From positions 124,001 to 188,000 of IMG/VR virus record IMGVR_UViG_3300033233_000001: a stretch of 64,000 bases of DNA. One strand, 5' to 3'. Below are positions 1,425 through 54,223 of the stretch, piece after piece. Both the position numbers and the translations under genes were made by a program. Position 1 is the stretch's first letter. Every line of letters begins with the position of its first letter. The notes below the pieces were generated by a model. It saw nothing but the letters and a program-made list of their open reading frames with translations. It had not been told where the DNA came from and made no database searches.

Positions 1425-1646
1425 ATGGGCTGGATCTCGGACAGGAAGATGCGCTCTGGCTCCGGCGTCGGCGGCAGGCGGAAGGGCCGCGTCTACGCGA
1501 AGGACGGCGCGCCGCTGCGGAAGGTCGTCGCCATCCGGTGGCACTCGGGCTCGATGTTCGTGCCGGACCGGGTGGCGCTCGAATGCGGGCACGAGGCTGA
1601 ATCGTGGGGAGGCGTGCGAGCGCGGTGTCCGGCCTGCAAGCCGTGA
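1425..1646 (+). CDS. small Zn-ribbon protein
   Basis: LECGH...CPAC motifs. Confidence 0.45.
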   Translation: MGWISDRKMRSGSGVGGRRKGRVYAKDGAPLRKVVAIRWHSGSMFVPDRVALECGHEAESWGGVRARCPACKP

Positions 1647-1846
1647 GGTTGCGGTCGGCCGGCGGCGATGGTACCGTCCGCAGACCATGCACGACAACGC
1701 CAAGACCTCCGAGCCGATCGCACCGACGCGTCCGCGCGTGCTGCTCGCGTGGCCCGAGGGGCGCGGACCGCTGCTCGCCGGGCAGCCGGCGCGGTGCCGG
1801 GTCGCCGGTCAGGCGCGCGGGCACTACGCGTTCGCGTGAGCACCGC

Positions 1847-2908
1847 GTGTCCTGGGACCTCGTCGAGTCTCTCCGTGGCCCGGAGGGGTATCGGCTCGTA
1901 CTGAGCCTCGGCGGCGGCGACAGGAGACGAGGCGAAGAGATTGCGCGTCTGATGGCCGCGTTCTTCGCGAACAAGCCGCCAACCACGCGTCGCACGTATG
2001 GTTACGGGGTCCGATACTTCCTGGATCTGGTGCAGTGGAAGGACATCCGCACTATCTCGTTGGCTGATGCGGTTCTGTACAAGCGCTATCTGATGGAGCC
2101 AGAGCGCAAGTACAGCAATAGCACGATCTGCACATATTTGGCGGCCATCGACAGCTTCCTTGCGTTCTTGACGAGGCCGGTTGGCGACAACGCAGCGCAG
2201 GTGATTCCGCGGAATCCATTCGACTTCATCGATCGCAAAGACGTGTCGCCGACGGCCTGGGCAAAGTCGCATTCCGACGCGGTAGCGCAAGATGACCTCA
2301 AGAGGATGCTCGACGCTCTGCCGACCGACCCGGTCGGCATGCGTGACCGAGCCGTGCTCGTCTTCCTGGCCAAGACTGGTCGCCGTCGTTCGGAAGTGGC
2401 AGGCCTGCGTGTCGGCAATCTCATCAACGTCAACGTTGAGGGCGTGCGTCCGAGTTATCGCTGCAAAGTGAAGGGCGGCAAGGACAAGGAGTTCGAGTTG
2501 CCCGCTGAGGCATACGAGGCGATGCGTGTGCATTGGATCAGCAGCGGTCGCCTCGACCGACTGAGGCCCGAGAGCGCGGTGTTCGGTGAAGCGGCTCCTT
2601 GCGCGTTGTCGGTCGGGCTCGACCTAGAGCGGCCGCTCCATCATACCGTGATCTGGAAGATTGTGAAGAACGCCGCGTCGCGCGCCGGGCTCGATCCGAC
2701 GAAGATCAAGGTACATGGCCTTCGTCACATGGCAGCGCGGACTCTGAACCGCGGCGGCGCCCGTCTCCAGGACATCCAGCAGTTCCTTGGTCACGAGCAT
2801 CCGAACACGACCGGTCGCTACCTCGGAAAGCTCGAAGGGCCCGCGCCCGCGCTCACGGAGTACATGGAGCGGGGTCGAGAGGCGGAGACGACGGGCCGGG
2901 ACGGCTAG
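1847..2908 (+). CDS. tyrosine recombinase/integrase (XerC/D-like)
   Basis: RDRA..TGRRRSE, KGGK, HGLRH and LGHEHPNTTGRY give the R-K-H-R-H-Y catalytic set; start uncertain. Confidence 0.93.
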   Translation: MSWDLVESLRGPEGYRLVLSLGGGDRRRGEEIARLMAAFFANKPPTTRRTYGYGVRYFLDLVQWKDIRTISLADAVLYKRYLMEPERKYSNSTICTYLAAIDSFLAFLTRPVGDNAAQVIPRNPFDFIDRKDVSPTAWAKSHSDAVAQDDLKRMLDALPTDPVGMRDRAVLVFLAKTGRRRSEVAGLRVGNLINVNVEGVRPSYRCKVKGGKDKEFELPAEAYEAMRVHWISSGRLDRLRPESAVFGEAAPCALSVGLDLERPLHHTVIWKIVKNAASRAGLDPTKIKVHGLRHMAARTLNRGGARLQDIQQFLGHEHPNTTGRYLGKLEGPAPALTEYMERGREAETTGRDG

Positions 2909-4279: not shown

Positions 4280-4774
4280 ATGCGCCCGCGAGAGCCAGAC
4301 GACGTATACACGTCACCGAGCGAAGCCGACCGCGCTCGCGCCTCGAAAGTTGCGATGAGGTGCTCCTACTGCAAGTCTCCGCTGCATCGCGCGCCCGACT
4401 GCCAAGCGCTGGCCGACGCCCCGATGATCGGCGGCCACGACATCATCGTCGACGGCAAGGTCTCCTCGAAGGCGCCGGATTTCGTGCGCCTGCGCTTGTT
4501 CGCCGTCTGGCCGCGCGGCGTGGTCATGCGCGCCGACGACAAGAAGGAAGACCTGCGTCCGCTCTCGGAGCCCGCTCCGTTCTGGCGCACGCGTCCGAAG
4601 TCCGAGCTTCTCGTCTGGCGATTGAAGCGGCTCGCCGCTGCCGACTACCCGTACCCCGGCATGCTGCACCTGTTCTTCGGACCGAAGCAGATCACGCTCG
4701 TGGCCGGTGACGACACGCTGGCGCTGGCGCGTGAGATTGCCGTCGCGCTGCGTACGGAAGGATTCGTCCGATGA
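4280..4774 (+). CDS. CCHC zinc-knuckle protein
   Basis: CSYCKSPLHRAPDC fits C-x2-C-x4-H-x4-C. Confidence 0.6.
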   Translation: MRPREPDDVYTSPSEADRARASKVAMRCSYCKSPLHRAPDCQALADAPMIGGHDIIVDGKVSSKAPDFVRLRLFAVWPRGVVMRADDKKEDLRPLSEPAPFWRTRPKSELLVWRLKRLAAADYPYPGMLHLFFGPKQITLVAGDDTLALAREIAVALRTEGFVR

Positions 4775-5112
4775 AGACGCGTCGTCGCATCCGACGCGAG
4801 CGCGTCGCGTTGAATCTCTTCGCGCGCTGGATGTCGGCCTTGGCCCCGAAGGAGACGCTGGACAACTCACCGTGGTTCCGCGAGCGCGCCGCTAAGAGCG
4901 CCGCTCAGCATCGCGCTGACGTAAGGGCGAGCCCGATGTACCTGCTGAGTGCTCATGCTTGGTGCGGACCGATCCCGGAGCCGTATTGCGCGCGTTGCGG
5001 CACATGGGTAGGGCGGTGGCCGAGGTTTGCCAGCGCTAAAGACGTCAAGAGCCGTCGCTCCTGCCACTTCTGTTCCGAACGGTGCATGCGAGGGCTCCCG
5101 TGCCGCGACTGA
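4771..5112 (+). CDS. Cys-rich hypothetical protein
   Basis: ATGA overlap with the previous ORF; CARCG and FCSERC motifs. Confidence 0.55.
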   Translation: MKTRRRIRRERVALNLFARWMSALAPKETLDNSPWFRERAAKSAAQHRADVRASPMYLLSAHAWCGPIPEPYCARCGTWVGRWPRFASAKDVKSRRSCHFCSERCMRGLPCRD

Positions 5113-5804
5113 TCTTCGTCTCGGACACGCACACGATGCACGGCCGTCTCACTCAAGCGATCATCGCTGCCAAGGCCGACATCCTCGTGCACTGCGGCGA
5201 CTTCACCGGCACCGGCAGGCTCACCGAAGTCGGCGATTTCGCAGACTGGTGCGCGGTGCTCTTGAAGAAGGGCTACGTAAAGCGCGTCGTTGCCATCGCC
5301 GGCAATCATGATCTTCTCTTTGACGAGACGCATCCGCGTACGCGTCGCGACTGGCCCACTGGACCAGAGATGTGCCGCAAGCGGCTGCGTGATGCCGGCG
5401 TCGTCTACCTCCGTGACTCGGCGACGATGATCGAGGGCTTGGTCTTTCACGGTATCCCCTGGACCGGCCGCTTTTACGACTGGGCCTTTCAGATCGACTC
5501 GCCCGAGCAGGACGAAGAGGTCTTCGGCGGACTGAGGCCCGGCATCGACGTGCTCATGACGCACGGGCCGCCGCATGGCATCCGAGACCTCGTGCCGCGC
5601 GGCGAGAACACGGGCTCTCCCGCGCTGCTGCGCGCACTCGACCGCGCGCGACCGCAGGTCAACGCCTTCGGCCACATCCATGAGGGCTACGGCATGACGC
5701 TCATGCCCAACGGCGCCCTGTGCATCAACGCCTCGACGTGCACAGGCGACTACAAGCCGACGAACCCGCCGATCGTTCTCGATCTGGAGCCTCGCGCGCG
5801 ATGA
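5100..5804 (+). CDS. calcineurin-like metallophosphoesterase
   Basis: SDTH, GDF, GNHD, THGPP and GHIHE motifs. Confidence 0.92.
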   Translation: MPRLIFVSDTHTMHGRLTQAIIAAKADILVHCGDFTGTGRLTEVGDFADWCAVLLKKGYVKRVVAIAGNHDLLFDETHPRTRRDWPTGPEMCRKRLRDAGVVYLRDSATMIEGLVFHGIPWTGRFYDWAFQIDSPEQDEEVFGGLRPGIDVLMTHGPPHGIRDLVPRGENTGSPALLRALDRARPQVNAFGHIHEGYGMTLMPNGALCINASTCTGDYKPTNPPIVLDLEPRAR

Positions 5805-6369
5805 GAGCGCGCGAGACGCTCGTGCCCGGCGGCTGGGTGCTCTACGAGCCTGGCTTCGTGCGCTCGTCCGGCGCGCTCATGGAGGCCCTGCTCGCCGTCC
5901 TGCCGCTGCGTGCAGAGACTCTGCGCGTTGCCGGCCGGGACGTGCTCACGCCGCGCTTGGTCAGCTGGCACGGGGATCCGGGCACCTCGTACGCGTACTC
6001 CGGAAGCCGCTTCGAGCCAGGGCCCTGGCCAGCCGTGCTCGACGTGCTGCGTGCGCAGCTGGCCGAGGTCGGCGTGTTCAACTCGATGCTAGCGACGGCC
6101 GCGACTCTATCGGCTTCCACGCTGACGACGAGCCCGAGCTAGGACCGGCTGCGCCCGGCGACGTACTGATCGCTTCGATCTCGCTGGGCGCGCGCCGCCG
6201 CTTCGTACTGAAGAATCGGACGGGCGAGAAGCGCGAGTACCCGTTGGGACTCGGAGACCTCCTCGTCATGGGCGGGACGACGCAGCGGCACTGGGTGCAC
6301 GGCGTACCGAAGACGTCGCTCGCGGTCGGTCCGCGACTGAACCTTACCTTCCGGCAGGTGCGAACGTGA
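5801..6369 (+). pseudogene. alkB: frameshifted AlkB-family 2OG-Fe(II) dioxygenase
   Basis: The N-half (TPRLVSWHGD..YAYSG..FNSML) and the C-half (DSIGFHADDEPELG..HGVPK..RLNLTFR) are in different frames; junction near 6093. Confidence 0.85.
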
Positions 6370-12084: not shown

Positions 12085-13068
12085 TCACCTTTCCAGGTAG
12101 CGATTCGAGACGAGCTTGAGCATGACGCGGCCGATCTCCGGGTCGGACCGCTCTGCTGCCGGCTTGATGACGATGCCCTCCGAGAGGTGCTTGGCGATGG
12201 CGCTGTTGCCGATCGCAAGCTCCTCCATCTTGGCCTCCGAGTACGGGCCGACGTAGAGCAGCGGCACGCGCGTGTTCTTCGAGCCCTCTTCGTCCATGGT
12301 GAAGCCCCAGAAGTCGACCGACGAGTCCCAGACGTTGCCACGCAGGATGTCGAAGGCGCGAAAGAAGACCTGCCCCTTGTCCGCATCGTACCGGAGGTCT
12401 TGCACCTGGCCGAAAACCTCTCCGTAGAGGACAGCGTCCTGGTTGGCCTTACACCACTCGGCGATCCACGGGTTCTGCTTCAGCGCCTGCCACCAGGGAT
12501 CTCCCGGCTGCTGGCCTTCGGCCGGCGGGCGCTTCCACTGCGTACGCGAGCCGCACCACATGCGGTCCTCGCGGTAAGCCATGCGAGCGTTCCCTCCGTG
12601 CAACTTCTCGCTGACGTAGACCGTCTCGCCCTCGACGAACAGGTGCTTGTAGCGTCTCCAGTTCTCGACGTCGTACTTCGGGACGTAGGCCAGCGCCTCG
12701 CACGGGCGCTCCGCGTCACCGTCGGTGCCGAACTCGATGGGAGGCTCCCAGCGCTTGATGCCGAGGGCTTCCATGACGTCGTCGCCCTCGGCCGCTCCTT
12801 CGGGAGCACGGATCAGTAGCCCCTGCGACCACGTGCCTCGAAGCCGCTTGGCTTTGATGCGCGTCTTGCCCGCAAGGAAGGCCGCCCAGGGCGCGTCGGC
12901 CGGGACGACGTAGTCGGGCTCGATGTACGCACAGAGGTCACCGGGTGAGAAGTCGCCGAGGCGTACCGCGCAGGTCCAGCCGTGGATCTGCACGAGCCCG
13001 AGGCTGTCGGCGTTCGGGTGCTTGACGATCTCTTTGATGCGGACGACGTCGACGCGGTGCGTGCTCAT
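12085..13068 (-). CDS. ATP-dependent RNA ligase (Rnl5/DRB0094-like, N-terminal OB fold)
   Basis: HPNADSL..LRGTWSQGLL; motif I EKLHG, YGEVFG, FDI, EGIVIK and motif V KLVS. Confidence 0.9.
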   Translation of the reverse strand: MSTHRVDVVRIKEIVKHPNADSLGLVQIHGWTCAVRLGDFSPGDLCAYIEPDYVVPADAPWAAFLAGKTRIKAKRLRGTWSQGLLIRAPEGAAEGDDVMEALGIKRWEPPIEFGTDGDAERPCEALAYVPKYDVENWRRYKHLFVEGETVYVSEKLHGGNARMAYREDRMWCGSRTQWKRPPAEGQQPGDPWWQALKQNPWIAEWCKANQDAVLYGEVFGQVQDLRYDADKGQVFFRAFDILRGNVWDSSVDFWGFTMDEEGSKNTRVPLLYVGPYSEAKMEELAIGNSAIAKHLSEGIVIKPAAERSDPEIGRVMLKLVSNRYLER

Positions 13069-14690
13069 GTTCGGACCTCCGGTCGGTATTCGCCGGGTCC
13101 GACGGACCAGATCCATTCCTGCGCCGCAAGCGCGGTGGGCACTTCTGGCGGTACCGGCATGACGAACATCCGACCTGTCCCGCAGCGCACACGAAGAAAC
13201 CTCTCGCCAGGAGAATCAGGCAGATCGACGCGCAGAAGCGTGCCGATTTCAGGGTCAGGATCGGTGTCGATCGTCTCGTGCGGTAGTGCCGCGAGAATGC
13301 CGTCCCAGCCCACGATCTCTGCGGCCGCGCGCCGCTGTTCGATCTGCGGCCAGGTCAGCGCGGTCGTCGGGTCGAGAGACCCTCGGCGTTCGATCCACTC
13401 CCGCGGAACGCGCGTTCCATGCCATGAATACACCGACCATCCGTCGCGATAGCTGAGTGCCGGACCATGCTCGGCGTGTGAGCGGTGATCGACGTCGCGC
13501 GAGATAGTCTTCGGAAAGTCGGAGACGAGGCAGAAGCGGGAGTGCATGAATCGGTGACAGCCGTAGATCGCAGCACGCTCGTAGTGAATCCAGCGGTCGT
13601 ACTCCGGCAGCCGCAGACCGGCCACTTCACGGAAGAACGATAGGTACGAGCACCATTGCCCCCAGTGATTGCCGCCGTTCCAGTTACGAGACCATTGTGC
13701 CAGCGAAGCGAGTAGAAGCCGGACCAGAGGCCCGTCCGTGGCGTCGTTCGTGGCGTCGTTCGTGGCGTCGCGCGTGGCGGCGTGCGTGGCGGCGTGCGTG
13801 GCGTCGTGCGTGGCGGCGGCGTTCGTGGCGTCGCGCGTGGCGTCGTGCGTGGCGGCGTGCGTGGCGGCGCGCGTGGCGTCGTGCGTGGCGACGTTCGTGG
13901 CGACGTTCGTGGCGTCGCGCGTGGCGTCGTGCGTGGCGGCGTTCGTGGCGTCGCGCGTGGCGTCGTGCGTGGCGGCGTGCGTGGCGGCGCGCGTGGCGAC
14001 GTTCGTGGCGGCGCTCGTGGCGACGCGCGTGGCGACGCGCGTGGCGTCGTGCGTGGCGTCGCGCGTGGCGTCGCGCGTGGCGACGCTCGTGGCGTCGCGC
14101 GTGGCGACGCTCGTGGCGACGTTCGTGGCGGCGCTCGTGGCGACGTTCGTGGCGGCGCTCGTGGCGACGCGCGTGGCGACGTTCGTGGCGACGCTCGTGG
14201 CGACGTTCGTGGCGTCGCTCGTGGCGACGTTCGTGGCGGCGCTCGTGGCGACGCGCGTGGCGACGTTCGTGGCGACGCTCGTGGCGACGTTCGTGGCGTC
14301 GCTCGGCTTTGGCAGCGGATCCAGCGGCAACCCGTGCGCCGCTTTAGCGATCCGAGCGGACGCCACTCGGATGGCAGCCGCGTAGTCCGTCTCGGTCAGC
14401 GTACGACCGCAGAGCGCCACATGCTTTTCGGGATGCTCTCGCAGCCACCAAACCATTGACGCAAAACACCAAGCGGCAGCACCGACGATTGGGCTCGGAA
14501 CGTAGATCACCGGAACCGTCGGCAGCTTAGCTGCCCGGTAGAGCCCGTCGATCGCCTCGGTGCAGAAGCGTCGATCTTCGTCCGTCTGCGGCGCGGTCCG
14601 GAGAATTCTGGAAAGCCACAGATCACGCCACTCCGGCAGGCGAGCGCGGTGCTCGTCCGTCAGCGAGTAGACAGCGCGCTTCTTGGCCAT
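13065..14690 (-). CDS. DUF6745-like protein with an internal tetrapeptide repeat
   Basis: GPALSYRDGWSVYSWHGTRVP..IEQRRAAAEIVGWD..LRVRCGT. Confidence 0.75.
   Translation of the reverse strand: MAKKRAVYSLTDEHRARLPEWRDLWLSRILRTAPQTDEDRRFCTEAIDGLYRAAKLPTVPVIYVPSPIVGAAAWCFASMVWWLREHPEKHVALCGRTLTETDYAAAIRVASARIAKAAHGLPLDPLPKPSDATNVATSVATNVATRVATSAATNVATSDATNVATSVATNVATRVATSAATNVATSAATNVATSVATRDATSVATRDATRDATHDATRVATRVATSAATNVATRAATHAATHDATRDATNAATHDATRDATNVATNVATHDATRAATHAATHDATRDATNAAATHDATHAATHAATRDATNDATNDATDGPLVRLLLASLAQWSRNWNGGNHWGQWCSYLSFFREVAGLRLPEYDRWIHYERAAIYGCHRFMHSRFCLVSDFPKTISRDVDHRSHAEHGPALSYRDGWSVYSWHGTRVPREWIERRGSLDPTTALTWPQIEQRRAAAEIVGWDGILAALPHETIDTDPDPEIGTLLRVDLPDSPGERFLRVRCGTGRMFVMPVPPEVPTALAAQEWIWSVGPGEYRPEVRT
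13738..14304. repeat. 12-bp coding tandem repeat GTGGCGnCGnnC (about 47 units)
   Basis: Encodes ATNV/ATSA/ATRD/ATHD units on the minus strand. Confidence 0.95.
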
Positions 14691-20293: not shown

Positions 20294-20642
20294 CGGAGTC
20301 AGTCCCTCACGTCACGTCGAAGCAAAACCGGACCGCCCTCACGGAAGTCACCGCGGCAGACGCAACCGTATTCCGTAACGCCGAGGTACTCCATCTCGAC
20401 GAGCATGCACGTCCGCCGGCACTCGTCCTGACGCGCTCGCTCCGGCGCGGTGGCCAGCATGCGCCAGACGAAACAGCCGCCGACCGCGAGCAGCAAGATC
20501 GTGATCGACCAGAAGACGTTTGCAGTCAGCCCAGCCCAGTCAGAGCGCATGAGTCGGTCCTAGCACCTCCGGCAACGGCCGACAAGTGCTTACGACACAC
20601 TTTCGAGCGGATGCCGGAAGCGGCTGGCTTACTTGAAGGACT

Positions 20643-45625: not shown

Positions 45626-45670
45626 AATCTACGGCGTGTCGGACAGAATGTCAAGCGGCTTCCGACACAC
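45626..45670 (-). promoter_or_regulatory. promoter with operator boxes
   Basis: GTGTGTCGGAAGC, then TTGACA-17-TAGATT-8-GTG. Confidence 0.7.
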
Positions 45671-45724: not shown

Positions 45725-46028
45725 CCCGACGCACCTAACACTTCGATCTCGCATGTGTCGTACCAGCATGAGTCCGAGCGACCTGACCTGCTTGACCCTT
45801 CGATCTCGCCTGTCGAGGGGCGCTGGCGTGACGCGCGTCACGGCCCGACCTGCTTGACCCTTCGATCTCGCCTGTCGAGCAGCTGGCTAACACTGCGTGG
45901 CCATCCGATCAAAGACTACCCGACCTGCTTGACCCTTCGATCTCGCCTGTCGAGGCCTACGGCGACCTCGACGCCGGGGCCCGCGACCGTGTCCCGACCT
46001 GCTTGACCCTTCGATCTCGCCTGTCGAG
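45725..46028 (-). CRISPR. Cas12f-associated array (4 repeats plus a divergent terminal repeat)
   Basis: 36-nt repeat CTCGACAGGCGAGATCGAAGGGTCAAGCAGGTCGGG at 45993, 45919, 45844 and 45782; variant at 45725; spacers of 38, 39, 26 and 21 nt. Confidence 0.92.
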
Positions 46029-46090
46029 AGCCGTCGAAAAACACCAGCGATTCCGCGGGCCTCGTAGCCGGTCTGCGAGCGGTCCCTGTT

Positions 46091-46287
46091 CTCGACATGT
46101 GAGATCGAAGTGCCAAGCACGTTCGAGCGCTTCGTGGCCAACGCATCGAACTGGATTTCCGAACAAGTACCATTACTTGCTACGGTCCACGTACCTTCGC
46201 GAGCGGGTCCGGTACTTTTGCAAGCACCGGGGCCCCTCGCGTTCGTGCCCATCGGGGGGCACATCACCGAACTTGCGTTCGGAGAAA
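46091..46287 (-). ncRNA. tracrRNA, copy 1
   Basis: Inverted repeat copy (anti-repeat) at 46091-46126 plus hairpins; paralogous to 48632-48812. Confidence 0.8.
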
Positions 46288-47805
46288 TCATTCGGCCGCC
46301 TGCGCCTTCTCCGTGCGGGCCTTCTTTCGGATTCGACCGGACGCGCGCTTGATCGCTGCGATCTGATCCGGCAGCGGCAGCGGCTTACCGTCCCGCAGGA
46401 GCATGTTCCACGCGTAGATGACGTCGACGGGACGCTCTAGCCTGCACGTCACGACCTCACAGCAGAACTTGCCGCTCTTGCCGAAGGTCGCGCTGACCTC
46501 GGCCGAGTGCTCGTGCAGGCACGACGGACACGTCCGCGAGTTCATGTCGCTCGGCACGATCTCGACCGTCAGCCCCCGCTTCTTCGCCGCCCACTCGATG
46601 GACTCTCGCAGCTGCGCGAGCGGGAAGCTCCGCACGAGGTACTCGACGTGTTCGCCAAGCTCGGGAGCGCCATCCTTCGCTGGATTGCCCCAGTCTTCGA
46701 CGAGGATCCGCGACACGCCGCGCCTTTCGGCGAGGCGCATCGCGTGCGACGCGATCTCCTGGCACTTCGTGCGTACCCACCTGGCCTCCGCGTCTTCGAG
46801 TCGCGTGAAGTGCTCTTCGCGCCGAGCAGTGCCGTGACCCTTGGCACCGTCACCAAGCTCGCGCTTGTGCCGACCGAGTGACGAGCGCCGCGCACGGTAC
46901 GCCGCCTTGTGGGCGAGCACGTCGCCGCCGTCGGCGAGCACAGTCGTGTACGCTTCACGCCCGTCGTCGCCGCGGGCGATTGCCGCGGTCAGGAACGTCC
47001 GCACGCCTCGATGCAGAGCCATCGTGCGGCCGGTCTCGGTCTTACGGACCTCGGAAGTGAAAGACACGAAGGCCATCCACTTCCGTTTGCCATCGCGATC
47101 GTCGTCTTCGACCAGGCGGCAGTCGCCGAGGCAGGCCGGATCGGCCAGAACACGCTTCAGCGACGCGAAGCCGCTTCCGCCGTAGGGCTTCACGACCAAG
47201 CGCACCTGTGTCGGCCGGTCGCTGTCCTCGCCGAACAACGGCAGCGTCAAGATCGCCAGGCCGTCGCTCGGTTCGAGACGGATCGCGCCGTTGCCTGACG
47301 CGATGTAGATCGGAGAGCCACCCCTGAAGGTGGGAAGCGACATCTTGCCCTTCCATTTTTCCTTCCGCCACTTCTTCCAGCGCGTGAAGGCCGCACCGGC
47401 CGTACCAAGCAGGACTTTCGCGCCGGGGTACGTCGTCGCGACCTTCTCGTCGCCGTAGTACGGCTTGCCCTTCTTGACGCGTGCGGCCGCGGCCTCGCGT
47501 TCGTTGAGCCAGAGGTCACGCGTCAGCTGGTAACTCCGCGACCGCGCTAGGATCTTTCCGGCCTTCTTTGCGCCGAGCTTGCCGGCGCGCTCCTCGACTT
47601 CGAGATCGGTGATCACGCCGTTGAGGACGCGATGGATCGGAGCGCGCAGCGCGCGCAGGAGCGGCCCGAGTGCCGCCCAGTCGTGGTCGAGCGGGCGGAT
47701 CACCTCCAACCGCAGGGTCGAGACGATCTGCGCATCGACCGCCGCATCGTCTAACGCGGCCTCGACGACGAGCGGCCCCGTCTCTTCTTCAGCGGGCTCA
47801 GTCAC
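46288..47805 (-). CDS. cas12f: Cas12f1-like effector, predicted nuclease-dead (about 505 aa)
   Basis: Colinear with AsCas12f1 as recalled (LEVIRPLDHDW, GKMSLPTF, DGGD..GHG, ILVED, CPSC/CCEV Zn ribbon); RuvC-I reads MALHRG in place of MGIDLG. Confidence 0.85.
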   Translation of the reverse strand: MTEPAEEETGPLVVEAALDDAAVDAQIVSTLRLEVIRPLDHDWAALGPLLRALRAPIHRVLNGVITDLEVEERAGKLGAKKAGKILARSRSYQLTRDLWLNEREAAAARVKKGKPYYGDEKVATTYPGAKVLLGTAGAAFTRWKKWRKEKWKGKMSLPTFRGGSPIYIASGNGAIRLEPSDGLAILTLPLFGEDSDRPTQVRLVVKPYGGSGFASLKRVLADPACLGDCRLVEDDDRDGKRKWMAFVSFTSEVRKTETGRTMALHRGVRTFLTAAIARGDDGREAYTTVLADGGDVLAHKAAYRARRSSLGRHKRELGDGAKGHGTARREEHFTRLEDAEARWVRTKCQEIASHAMRLAERRGVSRILVEDWGNPAKDGAPELGEHVEYLVRSFPLAQLRESIEWAAKKRGLTVEIVPSDMNSRTCPSCLHEHSAEVSATFGKSGKFCCEVVTCRLERPVDVIYAWNMLLRDGKPLPLPDQIAAIKRASGRIRKKARTEKAQAAE

Positions 47806-48422
47806 GCTGCATCTCGACGTGACGTGCGCTTCTGTGCCTCGACGGCCGACGGGCTCGTCTCCGAGCCGGCGGCGCGCTTCGGCGTCTTCCGCAGCTGCCT
47901 GATCTCGGCACGCAGCGTGGCGTTCTCGACGCGCAGACGGTCGCACTCTTCCTTGGCCGCGACGAGTTCACTCGCGAGCGCCGTGTAACTCTTGTGACCC
48001 GCGCCCGCTCCGAGAATTCGAGAGCGCAGATCGCTCGCGAGACGACTCACGGTCTGAGCCGAGATCGGCGTCCCGTTCGTACGCTCCCACGTCCGCGCCT
48101 CGTCGAGCATCTCGCGCTGCTTGCCGGCGTCGCGGAAGCGACCGGCGGCCACAACCGCATGAATTCCCACGCCTTCGATGCCCTTCGCGCCCAGACCGTT
48201 ACGCGCTGCCCTGTACCCGTCGTATCGCGACGGGCGGCACAGGTTCGTCTGCTCCAGGAACTGGAGGAACGTGAGGCCCGTGTCCTTCCACAGGCCGGTC
48301 ACCTGTTCCGCCTCGTAGAGATACGAGAGGAAGTCGCCCTCTGCATCGTCCGCCAGCGTTCGGAGACGCTTGGCCTCGGCGATGAACTGTTCGAGCGTCG
48401 TCGACTTGTTGATTCGCGGCAT
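47802..48422 (-). CDS. 206-aa protein translationally coupled to cas12f
   Basis: GTGA overlap with the cas12f start; C-terminal coiled coil. Confidence 0.75.
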   Translation of the reverse strand: MPRINKSTTLEQFIAEAKRLRTLADDAEGDFLSYLYEAEQVTGLWKDTGLTFLQFLEQTNLCRPSRYDGYRAARNGLGAKGIEGVGIHAVVAAGRFRDAGKQREMLDEARTWERTNGTPISAQTVSRLASDLRSRILGAGAGHKSYTALASELVAAKEECDRLRVENATLRAEIRQLRKTPKRAAGSETSPSAVEAQKRTSRRDAA

Positions 48423-48429
48423 GTTCGTA

Positions 48430-48473
48430 GGTCTACACGGCCCAGGACCGTGAGTCAAGAGCTTGCGACACAC
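48430..48473 (-). promoter_or_regulatory. promoter of the partner-cas12f operon
   Basis: Box GTGTGTCGCAAGC, then TTGACT-17-TAGACC-7-ATG. Confidence 0.7.
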
Positions 48474-48506
48474 CTCGTTCCGTGAAGTCGCGAACGCTGG
48501 AACCTA

Positions 48507-48594
48507 CCGGCACGGTCGACCTCTCGATCTGGCGCTGCGAGGTCGCTCTTGCGGCTCGCCCGACGCGCTTGACCATCGATCTCGCCGTCGCGAG
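48507..48594 (-). CRISPR. second degenerate mini-array (2 variant repeats, 17-nt spacer)
   Basis: 48559-48594 resembles the main repeat; 48507-48541 pairs with the anti-repeat at 48632-48666. Confidence 0.7.
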
Positions 48595-48631
48595 TGAGGA
48601 TGGATCGCTCTGGACCGATTACCCCGTCACG

Positions 48632-48812
48632 CTCGCAGCTCCAGATCGAAGGGCCGAACGTGTCCGAGCGCTTCATGGCCAACGCATCGAACTGGATTTC
48701 CTCATGAGCACCAGCGCTCACGAGGTCCACGTACCTTCGCGAGTGCGGCCGAGACCACCTCGCGTTCGGGCCAATCGGGTGGCCCATATCGCCGAGCTTG
48801 CGCTCGGAGAAG
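48632..48812 (-). ncRNA. tracrRNA, copy 2
   Basis: Shares GAGCGCTTC.TGGCCAACGCATCGAACTGGATTTCC, GGTCCACGTACCTTCGCGAG and CTTGCG.TCGGAGAA with copy 1. Confidence 0.8.
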
Positions 48813-50274: not shown

Positions 50275-51999
50275 CTAGTCGCGGATGAAGTCGGCGATGA
50301 CGGCCGGCGCCGCTGCGTCGAAGCCTACCACGTCGATCATGCCGGCGTCGGTCGGATCTGCGATCGTGAACTCCGACGCGTCGGTCGCGACCACGATGAG
50401 CTTGGACGCGATGCCCATGTTCTCGCGGTACTGCTTGAGCGCCACGTGCGGATGCACGGCGCCGGCCCACGTCTCGTTGTCCGTCGCGACGTAGAACGCC
50501 TCGACCTTCTGCTTCTGCGCGAGCGCGTGGAGCATCGGCAGCGCGCAGTCGGTGCCGCCCATGGGAACGGCCTCCATGGCCTTGATGACGTCGGGCAGCG
50601 TCGTCTTCGCCGTGATGTTGACCGGGAGCAGACGCGAGGGCTGGCCGCCCCAGCGTCCGCCGTAGCCAGCCGCGTGACCGGCCGAGCCGCTCGCGAAGCC
50701 CACGATGTCGTAGTCCGACTCGCGCCGCGCCGTGACCATCGCCATGCAGCCGACGGCCTCGCGTGCCGTGAGCGTCGTGCCCGCGATGAAGCTCGACGCC
50801 ATCGAACCTGACACGTCGAGCGCGAGCATGATGGACTTGCCGGTGGGCTCGACAGTCTCGAACGCCAGGTAGAACGCGTCGTCGAGGGCGTCGATGATGG
50901 ACTGCACCGGCGACCACGTCAGCTTGCCCTTCTCGCCGTGGCCGGCTGCGTACGTCTTGAGCGCGAGGAGCACTGCGATCGGATGCAGCCGCGACTTCTT
51001 GATGGCGTCGGCGTTCTTCAGCTGCTTCACGACGAGCTTCGATGCGTCCGAGCCAGGAACGAGCAGGCCGTTCGCCGTCATGCGCCCGAGGTTGCGCACG
51101 CAAGCGTGCATCGGCATGCGCTGGAGCAGCGCATCCCATACAACCGCGTGCTTCTGGTGCTCTGACGGCACCATCTCGTGAGTGAGCCCGTACTCACGGA
51201 TGATCGTGGCCGCCTCGTTCGCGTCCTTCGCAGCGCGCACCTTCTCGACGCCCTCGATCAGCGCCGGCAGGGCTCCGGCGGCGACCGCCTCGTACGAGAC
51301 GCCCGCCTCCTGCTGCTTGCGCTTGACGGAGCGCTCCCCGAGGCCGTCGCGTCCCGCGATGGTCCAGCGCAGGATGGACGAGACGATCGGATCCGTCGTC
51401 TTCGGGTGCGCCTGCCGAAGCAGGTCGCGGTGCGAGCGTCCGCCGCGCTGCTGGTACTTCAGCAGCTGGTAGGCGAGGTCTCGCCCCTCCTTGCTCGTGT
51501 ACCACGCGCCGACCGCGCGGCGCAGGCCCGAGCCCCAGCCGCGAAGCTGCTCGACCTGAGCGACGAACTCGAAGAGGTGCGTGCCGGTCCGGCACACGCG
51601 TGGCAGCGCGGCAAGCGCGAGGCGCCGCACAACCGCGTCCTCGTGGGCAGCGGCGACGGCGAGCGCGAAGATCGCCGCATCGTTCTTCGGCGCGCGACCC
51701 GACTCGCTGAGCGCAGCGATGTGCTCGACAGCGGCCGCAGCGTCGTCCTTGAGGCAGCGGCCGAGCGCGGTCGCGTTCTCCTTGACGAGCTTCTTCTCGC
51801 CGACGTGGAACGTCCCGCCCTCGGCGCCGAGGATCAGAAAACGGTCCAGCCGCTTCCAGTCGTCCACTTCAAACGTGAAGCCACCGGCCGCGTTCTTGAC
51901 CTGACGCACGTCGGCCTTCGCCGACTGCGGCGCGTCCTCGCGCGCAGCGGACACGGACTTCTTCTTCGACGCACCGAGGTGCGCGGCGTAGTTGGACAT
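50275..51999 (-). CDS. rsr: Ro60/Rsr TROVE-vWA RNA-binding protein
   Basis: NAAGGF..RFLILG, KYQQRGG..HRD, DVSGSM, GGTDCALPM, TDNETW and GFD. Confidence 0.95.
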   Translation of the reverse strand: MSNYAAHLGASKKKSVSAAREDAPQSAKADVRQVKNAAGGFTFEVDDWKRLDRFLILGAEGGTFHVGEKKLVKENATALGRCLKDDAAAAVEHIAALSESGRAPKNDAAIFALAVAAAHEDAVVRRLALAALPRVCRTGTHLFEFVAQVEQLRGWGSGLRRAVGAWYTSKEGRDLAYQLLKYQQRGGRSHRDLLRQAHPKTTDPIVSSILRWTIAGRDGLGERSVKRKQQEAGVSYEAVAAGALPALIEGVEKVRAAKDANEAATIIREYGLTHEMVPSEHQKHAVVWDALLQRMPMHACVRNLGRMTANGLLVPGSDASKLVVKQLKNADAIKKSRLHPIAVLLALKTYAAGHGEKGKLTWSPVQSIIDALDDAFYLAFETVEPTGKSIMLALDVSGSMASSFIAGTTLTAREAVGCMAMVTARRESDYDIVGFASGSAGHAAGYGGRWGGQPSRLLPVNITAKTTLPDVIKAMEAVPMGGTDCALPMLHALAQKQKVEAFYVATDNETWAGAVHPHVALKQYRENMGIASKLIVVATDASEFTIADPTDAGMIDVVGFDAAAPAVIADFIRD

Positions 52000-52037
52000 G
52001 ACGAATCTCCCAGAGACAAGAGCCCAGAGAATCAGAG

Positions 52038-52112
52038 CGTCCCATGGGGGACTCGAACCCCCGTTGCCGACGTGAGAGGCCGGCGTCCTTTGGCCATCTA
52101 GACGAATGGGAC
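52038..52112 (-). tRNA. tRNA-Glu(CTC)
   Basis: Cloverleaf. Confidence 0.88.
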
Positions 52113-52409
52113 AGGGAACTGTACAGGAACCGAAGACGAGATCAGGCCGCGACTTCTTCACCCGCGCGCGCCGGGGGCTTCGCTTCGACCTTCGGCGCGC
52201 ACTCCTTGCACACGAGCTTTTCCTTGGCGACCTCGTGTCCGAACCGCGTGTTCATCGGCCGGTCGAGGTGGTCGCGCTCGTACATGGCCACGCGGTACGA
52301 CGAGACGACGCGGACTGGGCGCGGGTCGAGCACGGTGCCGTTACGCATCGAGCCGTCGAACGCGATCCGGCAGACCTCACAGCGATAGCTCATCGGAATC
52401 ACCTTTTTC

Positions 52410-52932: not shown

Positions 52933-54223
52933 AAAATGTGATCGAACGTGTTCGTTCGGTCACGACTTGGCTCCTGCTTCCGCCACGACACTTGCTCGAC
53001 GCTGAGGCCGTCGAGTAGAGGCAGCCGTGTCCACAGGCGTAGCCTTGCGGCTGTTCCCCGAAAGCCTCGGGTACGCTTCCAAATTCAACGCGGCGTTGCG
53101 GTCTCGGTCCAGGACCAGACCGCATGCCTCGCACTCGTACGTCCTCGTGCCCAGCGACAACTCGGCCTTCACGACTCCGCAGCCGCTGCACGTCTTACTC
53201 GACGGGAACCACCGGTCAGCCACGATCACCTCGCAGCCGTAGACAGGTCCCTTCTGTATCAGCAGCGTCCTGAACATCCCCATCCCGACATCCGAGAGCG
53301 CACGCGCCAGCGAATGGTTTCTGAGCATCCCTGCCACGTTCATGCCCTCGATGACCGCCGCTTGGGTTTCACGCGCGATCTTCGTGGTCGTCTTGTGCAG
53401 GAAATCCTTCCGGATGTTCGCGACGTCTCGGTGAATCTTCGCCAGTTCCTCACGAGCCTTACGCCTGTTCGCGCTTCCCTCCTGTCTACGATGGAGCTTC
53501 CTGTTCGCACGCCGCAGCTTCTTCAACGCCTTCCGAAGCGGCTTCGGCGCGTCTAGGGGCTCTCCTCGTGACGGCACGACCGCAGTCTTGAGGCCCAGGT
53601 CGATGCCGAGGATCTCGTGCTCCGGGACGTTCGGCACCCGGAAGTCGCCCTCGACCTGAACCGACAGATACCAACGGTCGGCGATGCGCTTCACGCGACC
53701 GCCGAGGATCTTGCCGTGCAGCCTGAGCGGCTCGCGCGTCTTCACGCTGCCGATGACCGGGAGGTGAACGTGCTTGCCATCGGCAAGGAAATGGAATTTG
53801 TCGTTCGCGACGTAGAAGGCGTCACGGGTCTTGCCCTTCTTCTTGAAGTTCGGTGGTCCGACGCGTGGGCCCTGGCGCTTTCCCGTGATGCTCTTGATGT
53901 AGTTCGAGAACGCCGTGTCCAGGTCGGAGAACGCGCCGGCATTCGCGTCTCGCGGCGACTCGAAGATCCAGGGGAACGCTTCGCCCTTGATGGCGTTGAA
54001 CTGCTTCTTGAGCTTGGTCCCGCTGGGCTTCTGGCCGGCCCTGTACTGGCGGTTCCACTCGTGAAGTGCCCAGTTGTACGTGAAGCGCGCGACACCGCAT
54101 GCACGCAGCATCGCCTGGCGCTGCCGTACTGTCGGGTCGAGAGCTATGACGTGTCCGTGGATCATGTGATCGTGCGTCTGTAGTTTGTCCGTAAATGTCC
54201 GCGAAGACAAGAGCTAGCTATGG
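52924..54223 (-). mobile_element. non-autonomous IS607-like TnpB element
   Basis: Removing it rejoins GGAG|GGTGAACC, the tRNA 5' end; CGATCACAT occurs near both ends; no tnpA. Confidence 0.65.
52960..54165 (-). CDS. tnpB: TnpB RNA-guided endonuclease (intact D-E-D)
   Basis: N-terminal HTH, GIDLGLK, IEGM, CSGC/CEAC and DRDRNAALNL. Confidence 0.93.
   Translation of the reverse strand: MIHGHVIALDPTVRQRQAMLRACGVARFTYNWALHEWNRQYRAGQKPSGTKLKKQFNAIKGEAFPWIFESPRDANAGAFSDLDTAFSNYIKSITGKRQGPRVGPPNFKKKGKTRDAFYVANDKFHFLADGKHVHLPVIGSVKTREPLRLHGKILGGRVKRIADRWYLSVQVEGDFRVPNVPEHEILGIDLGLKTAVVPSRGEPLDAPKPLRKALKKLRRANRKLHRRQEGSANRRKAREELAKIHRDVANIRKDFLHKTTTKIARETQAAVIEGMNVAGMLRNHSLARALSDVGMGMFRTLLIQKGPVYGCEVIVADRWFPSSKTCSGCGVVKAELSLGTRTYECEACGLVLDRDRNAALNLEAYPRLSGNSRKATPVDTAASTRRPQRRASVVAEAGAKS

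Follow-up and report, generated by a model that had tools for sequence, protein, structure and literature searches.

The window analyzed here is a 64-kb stretch of IMGVR_UViG_3300033233_000001, a 297,749-bp IMG/VR viral contig from a phage of ~300 kb, and it carries a compact module in which a partner gene, a Cas12f-family gene (the effector), a scaffold resembling a trans-activating CRISPR RNA (tracrRNA) and a CRISPR array all lie on the minus strand. An earlier, sequence-only reading of this DNA had proposed these elements as a nuclease-dead Cas12f system of a phage; the open reading frame (ORF) list, the repeats and the sequence itself place every one of them where that reading did, on the minus strand, and a large-phage setting is borne out by the length of the source contig and by a GenBank relative, Virus Rctr197k. 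The central features are as follows.

47802..48422, minus strand: partner gene, 206 amino acids (aa) from ATG; its TGA overlaps the effector GTG as GTGA, 4 bp
46288..47805, minus strand: Cas12f-family effector gene, 505 aa, GTG start, C-terminal zinc ribbon (Pfam PF07282)
46085..46287, minus strand: tracrRNA-like scaffold 1, directly 3' of the effector stop and ending in an anti-repeat
46091-46131, minus strand: anti-repeat 1, 41 nucleotides (nt), complementary to the 36-nt repeat
45725..46028, minus strand: CRISPR array, five 36-nt repeats and four spacers of 38, 39, 26 and 21 nt
46028-45993, 45954-45919, 45879-45844, 45817-45782 and 45760-45725, minus strand: array repeats R1 to R5

The genes cas1, cas2 and cas4 accompany many, though not all, type V-F loci. 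A Pfam scan covering 20 window ORFs, either neighbouring or large, together with the gene tables of relatives, revealed no Cas1, Cas2 or Cas4 domain, in keeping with the proposal of a locus without cas1, cas2, cas4 or transposase genes; as a correction to the transposase part of that proposal, a canonical TnpB gene lies 5 kb away (52960-54210).

The effector and its partner

The effector falls within the Cas12f family, closest to AsCas12f, in line with the colinearity that the sequence-only reading had noted. Searched alone against the PDB with phmmer, it retrieves AsCas12f structures (E 4e-15); a 36-member family profile matches AsCas12f at nearly full length (E 1e-40, positions 5-433); and the best Foldseek matches of its AlphaFold2 model, which has a predicted local distance difference test score (pLDDT) of 87.5, are again AsCas12f (E 5e-23, template modelling scores 0.60/0.71). 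The same profile finds, with weaker matches in this order, other Cas12f proteins, TnpB, the sigmaE-linked dCas12f (E 1e-7) and Cas12m4a (E 2e-3), and Foldseek also matches the model to dCas12f (E 3e-12) and Cas12m2 (E 1e-11). The motifs that had been quoted as colinear with AsCas12f can be seen in the HMMER alignment. By profile and by Foldseek, the effector has the WED-REC-RuvC-zinc-ribbon architecture of a type V-F Cas12f homologue, and the adjacent array with its predicted anti-repeat tracrRNA agrees with that type, but the intact Asp-Glu-Asp triad of type V-F is missing. Residues 1 to ~25 are not conserved in the alignment and have low confidence in the AlphaFold2 model, so a later start codon is possible.

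The departure from the canonical triad lies in RuvC-I, where the HMMER alignment sets MALHRGV of the effector opposite MGIDLGV of AsCas12f, exchanging Asp for His; the RuvC-II Glu (ILVEDW) and the RuvC-III Asp (RPVDVIYAWNM) are kept, giving a His-Glu-Asp triad. In a fold of this kind, the first Asp of RuvC is indispensable. Among 39 homologues at 42-74% identity, almost all from metagenomic contigs, 36 were aligned, and His occupies the RuvC-I position in 35 of these and Arg in one. A HMMER scan of 1.84 billion representatives extended the comparison to a wider clade of 254 proteins below E 1e-30; 165 sequences with a length of 400 aa or more carry, in one-letter code, the triads HED (93), NED (18), RED (12), HDD (7), REE (7) and RAD (7), along with minor types. 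The RuvC-I Asp is absent from 163 of the 165, and the only two DED sequences are the most distant members. In a FastTree phylogeny rooted on these two, the effector falls in a 5-member clade within a strongly supported 50-member clade (47 His, 3 Arg). Because His recurs in 35 of 36 homologues and Asp is absent across the clade, we reject a sequencing error or a recent mutation as the source of the His, a family-wide residue; the change that had been read from a single sequence is genuine and shared by homologues, and its distribution indicates that it is ancient and selected.

Sister branches have Arg, Asn or Lys at the RuvC-I position, and some members (for example P0106) have lost the Glu as well. 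Arg or Lys at this position makes metal coordination impossible. These replacements and the loss of Glu suggest that catalysis is not what selection preserves in the clade. A precedent is provided by Cas12m2, in which a His-Asp-Asp site holds one Mg2+ and clamps the non-target strand without cleavage, so that silencing occurs by binding (PMC10442227). On the strength of this precedent and of the role of the RuvC-I Asp, the His-Glu-Asp effector most likely binds DNA without cutting it. We consider it improbable that the effector is instead a working interference nuclease, with a rearranged site that perhaps uses another metal or acts as a nickase in ordinary CRISPR activity against competitors. 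Such an enzyme would be in keeping with the Glu and Asp, each at least 90% conserved among close relatives, with arrays of varied spacers and with the argument that altered RuvC sites in TnpB and Cas12 branches stay active (PMC10691335); however, the Arg, Asn and Lys of the sister branches and the partial loss of Glu fit a relaxed catalytic constraint, and Cas12m2, non-cleaving with its H-D-D triad, did not regain cleavage upon reversion to D-E-D (PMC10442227).

The coupled partner gene claimed for this locus is confirmed by its conserved place beside the effector at nine loci (the window, L001, L004, L005, L008, L009, L010, the P0035 gene table and GenBank Rctr197k; L001/L002 correspond to a 392-kb JGI contig and NCBI assembly) and, in addition, in L024. 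The ORFs beside the effector in relatives encode partners of 194-224 aa, in most cases with the 4-bp overlap, and their identity to the window partner ranges from 31 to 60%, declining in parallel with effector identity. Locus L024, which encodes the distant Arg-type relative P0106 (Arg in RuvC-I, Ala in RuvC-II), carries a partner homologue (hhalign 96%, E 3e-9) that lies downstream rather than upstream of the effector, with an array of 11 or more repeats behind it; that the linkage is kept despite the changed gene order is strong evidence for joint function. The distant member P0053 has no partner-like neighbour upstream, and its contig ends directly 3' of the effector gene. The partner and the effector co-evolve, and the partner belongs to the system. 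One relative, L010, carries two tandem partner paralogues (4545-5162 and 5387-6004), each behind the same promoter motif; ahead of the second lie a shortened tracrRNA-like remnant and the conserved 16-mer of the guide-like element described below.

An AlphaFold2 model of the partner (pLDDT 83) is all-helical, with a confident N-terminal domain at ~1-140, a long leucine-zipper-like helix at 144-179 and a disordered basic tail, and the protein is probably dimeric. Beyond the coiled coil, no domain was found in Pfam, NCBIfam, PHROGs or a PDB profile search, and its fold has no significant Foldseek match in the PDB or BFVD. Sigma-70 regions were likewise absent by Pfam and NCBIfam, and the fold searches gave no match to them.

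These properties bear on the idea of an RNA-guided recruiter or activator, in which the effector would deliver the partner to DNA and the partner would engage RNA polymerase or another machine to turn on or redirect transcription, for example to time phage gene expression. The strict operonic coupling and co-evolution, kept when gene order changes, speak for such a division of labour, as do the precedent of dCas12f-sigmaE, including its autoregulatory guides (PMC13472631), and a conserved guide-like element at the operon promoter of the window, described below. We nevertheless regard this idea as unlikely, given a partner with neither sigma-factor regions nor a transcription-factor domain (Pfam, fold search), an effector that is remote from the sigmaE-linked dCas12f (E 1e-7 versus 1e-40 for AsCas12f) and that retains RuvC-III, zinc ribbon and arrays, and the 197-kb genome of Rctr197k, in which the spacers have no self-targets.

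Two tracrRNA-like scaffolds and their repeats

The scaffold stretch 3' of the effector is conserved in eight loci around an invariant core of complementary CGCGAGG and CTCGCGAAGGT segments. Its RNAalifold consensus contains compensatory changes in 9 of 23 pairs, its G-U pairs are compatible with the minus strand only, and Rfam holds no family that matches it. Array and tracrRNA are conserved together in L001, L008, L024 and Rctr197k. Anti-repeat pairing, the five repeats and the covarying stems all uphold the tracrRNA and array that had been predicted here.

The region at 48473-48812, by contrast, had been read as a promoter, and we find instead a second tracrRNA-like copy plus a mini-array of two repeats, which precede the partner gene in this order.

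48626..48812, minus strand: tracrRNA-like scaffold 2, with blocks 83-89% identical to scaffold 1 and with direct and inverted repeats
48632-48662, minus strand: anti-repeat 2, within scaffold 2
48506..48594, minus strand: upstream mini-array, with Ra (48594-48559) as an array-like repeat, then 17 nt of spacer and the diverged repeat Rb (48541-48506)
48486..48505, minus strand: guide-like 20-mer, directly 3' of Rb
48430..48473, minus strand: putative operon promoter (TTGACT, 17 nt, TAGACC), ending 8 nt before the partner ATG and preceded by motif GTGTGTCGCAAGCTC

When the two scaffold copies of the window are compared with the upstream copy of L004, 11 of 45 base pairs have changed on both sides with pairing kept. 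The predicted duplex energies separate the repeats into two sets: with anti-repeat 1 they are -50.5 kcal/mol for R1, -49.0 for Ra, -48.1 for R5 (diverged at 10 positions and yet almost equal to R1) and -25.8 for Rb, whereas with anti-repeat 2 they are -56.6 kcal/mol for Rb, -42.5 for R1, -38.0 for Ra and -25.6 for R5. As Rb pairs best with anti-repeat 2 and poorly with anti-repeat 1, it has co-varied with anti-repeat 2 and is not a decayed repeat, and the pairing predictions indicate that two orthogonal tracrRNA/repeat sets are present in one locus.

The guide-like 20-mer behind Rb is itself conserved, with its first 16 nt identical in L010 and 13 of 16 retained in L004 despite differing flanks; no second copy occurs in the window, nor an exact one elsewhere in the 298-kb source contig. 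Motif GTGTGTCGNAAGCTCTTGAC, conserved and containing the -35 of the putative operon promoter, follows 12 nt past the 20-mer, and motif GTGTGTCGCAAGCTC, in front of that promoter, is conserved in L004 and L010. The promoter failed the sigma-70 rule and is therefore putative only. We interpret the conserved 20-mer as a hard-wired guide, with a possibly autoregulatory role. In two relatives (L004:9230-9281 and L010:4300-4470), two to four small hairpin-like units of the GGGAAAATCCCC type take the place of a clear repeat behind the upstream tracrRNA-like copy.

A conserved motif found in more than one phage, GTGTGTCG-N-AAGC(T)CTTGAC, extends across the -35 of promoter-like sites. It also occurs at L010:4483-4514 and 5324-5355 and upstream of the partner gene in L004, and may represent a phage promoter class or an operator. 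The corresponding features of the window are these.

48454-48473, 45650-45670 and 20581-20600, minus strand: GTGTGTCG-type motif sites
45626..45670, minus strand: promoter-like site past the array, with the same upstream motif, TTGACA, 17 nt and TAGATT, fronting the next minus-strand gene

A candidate function and its rivals

Arrays, tracrRNAs and a co-evolving partner together make an RNA-guided DNA-binding complex the best-supported model, and we think it probable, on analogy with known systems, that the module is a phage-borne, adaptation-less, type V-F-derived complex of this kind that acts as a silencer or recruiter. The effector would load tracrRNA:crRNA guides (crRNA, CRISPR RNA) and bind complementary double-stranded DNA with no cutting, while the coiled-coil partner, made from the same mRNA, would work alongside it and stabilise the complex or provide a downstream contact. 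The outcome would be transcriptional silencing of, or a roadblock on, competing mobile elements or host genes. By analogy with Cas12m2, the conserved His-Glu-Asp site may serve strand clamping or RNA processing in place of DNA cutting, and the upstream orthogonal tracrRNA/repeat pair with its conserved guide would most plausibly have a set regulatory role, for example autoregulation or the recognition of one conserved target. We put forward more tentatively, and with some doubt, the fuller picture of a two-protein phage module with a new dimeric coiled-coil effector class and two orthogonal sets, one serving a variable array and the other a hard-wired guide directed at its own operon or at one target.

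Several results weigh against an RNA-guided silencer or recruiter. None of the spacers has a protospacer beyond chance in the window, in its source contig or among the viral and metagenome sequences scanned, and hence no protospacer-adjacent motif could be derived. Within the window, all five spacers and the upstream guide matched only the loci themselves at up to 4-6 mismatches, and exact 16- to 26-mers gave no other spacer or guide match in the source contig. Spacer 2 had no match in the viral-contig scan and returned the source contig alone in the metagenome scan, and the Rctr197k spacers have no self-target in its whole 197-kb record. The first 20 nt of spacer 1 are found exactly in a 126-kb viral contig (L007:6231-6250, IMGVR_UViG_3300048851_000105), but the match ends abruptly and the remaining 18 nt are random, which is compatible with chance. 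In addition, the partner contains no recognisable DNA-, RNA- or RNA-polymerase-binding domain (Pfam, Foldseek), the conserved 20-mer could be an operator for a protein, or part of a promoter, instead of a guide, and the effector may retain residual nuclease, nickase or RNA-processing activity, given that His binds metals and that its Glu and Asp are strongly conserved.

The L007 match to spacer 1 is apparently in coding sequence, with no ORF of at least 80 aa listed there, and the array repeat occurs among viral contigs in the source contig IMGVR_UViG_3300033233_000001 alone. The guide 16-mer has 11 scattered matches in viral contigs, close to the chance estimate. In genomes, the guide 18-mer has 102 matches (L029-L130), which cluster at one site in aceE (pyruvate dehydrogenase E1) of many Burkholderiales, Acidobacteria and others and at one in alphaproteobacterial genes whose translation we interpret as that of MucR/Ros-type regulators; the 18-mer is antisense to a conserved site, for example L045:5740-5757, that in all of them codes for ERWNL with high-GC codons. 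The L010 version of the guide matches the aceE site at 20 of 20 positions. We rejected this ERWNL site as the guide target since the L004 guide variant does not fit it, and the matches are probably a coincidence, albeit an unexplained one.

A dead effector and a phage tracrRNA could also serve as an anti-defence decoy that absorbs the crRNAs or tracrRNA of a host type V-F system, in line with a like role proposed for a phage Cas9 with inactivated RuvC (review PMC11656645). We hold this to be very improbable: the clade, both large and old, occurs on phage-like contigs, the module brings arrays and a dedicated partner of its own, and a pattern scan of 185,579 species-representative genomes found no relatives, leaving no evident host system to mimic.

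Comparison with characterized systems places the RNA-guided DNA-binding complex that we favour near several of them. AsCas12f (PDB 8J12, 7WJU, 8DZJ) is the best match in sequence and structure and shares the miniature size, the 3' anti-repeat tracrRNA beside the array, the zinc ribbon and the RuvC-II and RuvC-III residues, but the phage module differs from AsCas12f and type V-F1 in its RuvC-I His, its obligatory partner gene of ~200 aa, its lack of cas1/cas2/cas4, its residence in a phage and its two orthogonal tracrRNA/repeat sets. In Cas12m the triad is non-canonical, with His or Asn in first place, and that of Cas12m2 likewise starts with His; Cas12m2 too is carried by mobile elements, and the non-cleaving binding and mobile-element silencing that we propose for the phage module have been demonstrated there (PMC10442227). 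Cas12m is nonetheless a separate family: the Cas12m4a profile match involves the zinc-ribbon end only, the Foldseek match is weaker (E 1e-11 versus 5e-23 for AsCas12f), and Cas12m proteins have ~600 aa with a REC2 insertion, no partner, and a crRNA alone (a tracrRNA is unmentioned in PMC10442227).

The dCas12f-sigmaE systems of Bacteroidota (PMC13472631; PDB 9N9C) resemble the module in combining an inactivated, Cas12f-derived effector with a small cooperating partner in one operon, and their guides can address their own operon (PMC13472631), a property to be compared with the upstream guide-like element found here. Their partner, however, is an extracytoplasmic function (ECF) sigma factor bearing a distinctive, extended C-terminal domain, whereas the phage partner is an unrelated coiled-coil protein; their effectors are C-terminally truncated and their arrays mostly lost in favour of a single fused guide, whereas the phage effector keeps RuvC-III, zinc ribbon and arrays; and they are chromosomal rather than phage-borne, with only remote similarity to our effector (E 1e-7). 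TldR proteins, including the prophage fliC-associated clade, are naturally dead RuvC RNA-guided DNA binders that have a fixed conserved guide, comparable to the upstream guide-like element here, and that phages sometimes employ for gene repression, yet they derive from TnpB, use a single omega-RNA-like guide with neither array nor tracrRNA:crRNA duplex, and have a truncated RuvC and no conserved coiled-coil partner, in contrast to a phage effector that is nearest Cas12f and not TnpB. The phage module is thus like Cas12m2 and dCas12f-sigmaE in its logic and a member of neither, nor is it a TldR.

Previous work touches on such proteins briefly. A census mentions, without description, "large branches" of Cas12f whose catalytic sites are altered (PMC10691335), and the dCas12f study refers to a separate dead cluster linked to arrays, with a Chitinophagaceae genome assembly as the example displayed (PMC13472631). 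In the literature that we searched, we found no description of this phage clade, of its partner or of the exact two-protein module.

Related phages, genomic neighbourhood and implications

A GenBank relative is Virus Rctr197k (KX853510.1, Caudoviricetes, 197 kb), whose record contains this trio as well, with no other annotation than "transposase-like" and CRISPR. Its "transposase-like protein" is 45% identical to the effector and reads MAVHRGM / LLLEDW / VDLIVVWNM at the three RuvC motifs, a hypothetical protein is 35% identical to the window partner, and a recognisable tracrRNA scaffold accompanies the annotated four-repeat CRISPR. Its capsid and terminase genes are related to those of jumbo phage PaBG (PMC7412058), which supports a phage setting. 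A second, larger array (1.5 kb, with another repeat) lies in the same phage (L134:10803-12317 and 12351-14219; KX853510.1 110803-114219), adjoining a feature of ~620 codons that is noted as transposase-similar and is not an annotated CDS (coding sequence), 5 kb from the His-Glu-Asp system; this array and feature may constitute a second type V system in one phage.

In the window, the surroundings of the module include 33 tRNA genes and genes for a Ro60/TROVE protein, an RNA ligase and a tyrosine integrase. The Ro60/TROVE gene, with a vWA domain, lies a few kb upstream of the module (window 50275-52161, minus strand) and recurs at L004:6547-8292 and L010:1619-3331; the tRNA genes, the RNA ligase (12085-13116) and exoribonuclease-like genes near it resemble a set for RNA repair or quality control. 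The tyrosine integrase gene (1604-2908, plus strand) encodes Phage_integrase and SAM-like N-terminal domains. The TnpB gene (52960-54210, minus strand, 416 aa) sits within the tRNA island, 5 kb from the Cas12f-like module, and has HTH_OrfB_IS605, OrfB_IS605 and zinc-ribbon domains and a canonical D-E-D site, with Asp in its RuvC-I and RuvC-III motifs. A derivation of the Cas12f-like effector from this neighbour was rejected, as BLASTP similarity between them is absent.

Naturally nuclease-dead RNA-guided proteins (Cas12k, Cas12m, TldR and dCas12f-sigmaE) have each exposed a new use of programmable DNA binding, and the clade described here adds, beside transposase and sigma-factor recruitment, a phage-borne case with a conserved partner that has no recognisable fold. 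The clade is large and unnamed, with 254 representative clusters below E 1e-30 and the catalytic Asp nearly always gone, and its compact proteins (about 460-510 aa) may serve as ready-made binding-only scaffolds, while two orthogonal tracrRNA/repeat sets in one locus point to a natural route by which one protein could run two guide populations. If the proposed model holds, large phages would use CRISPR-derived silencing or regulation in place of cleavage. On the more tentative picture of a two-protein module with two orthogonal sets, the partner, being neither a nuclease nor a sigma factor nor a transposase, would turn RNA-guided DNA binding into a biological output by a new route.

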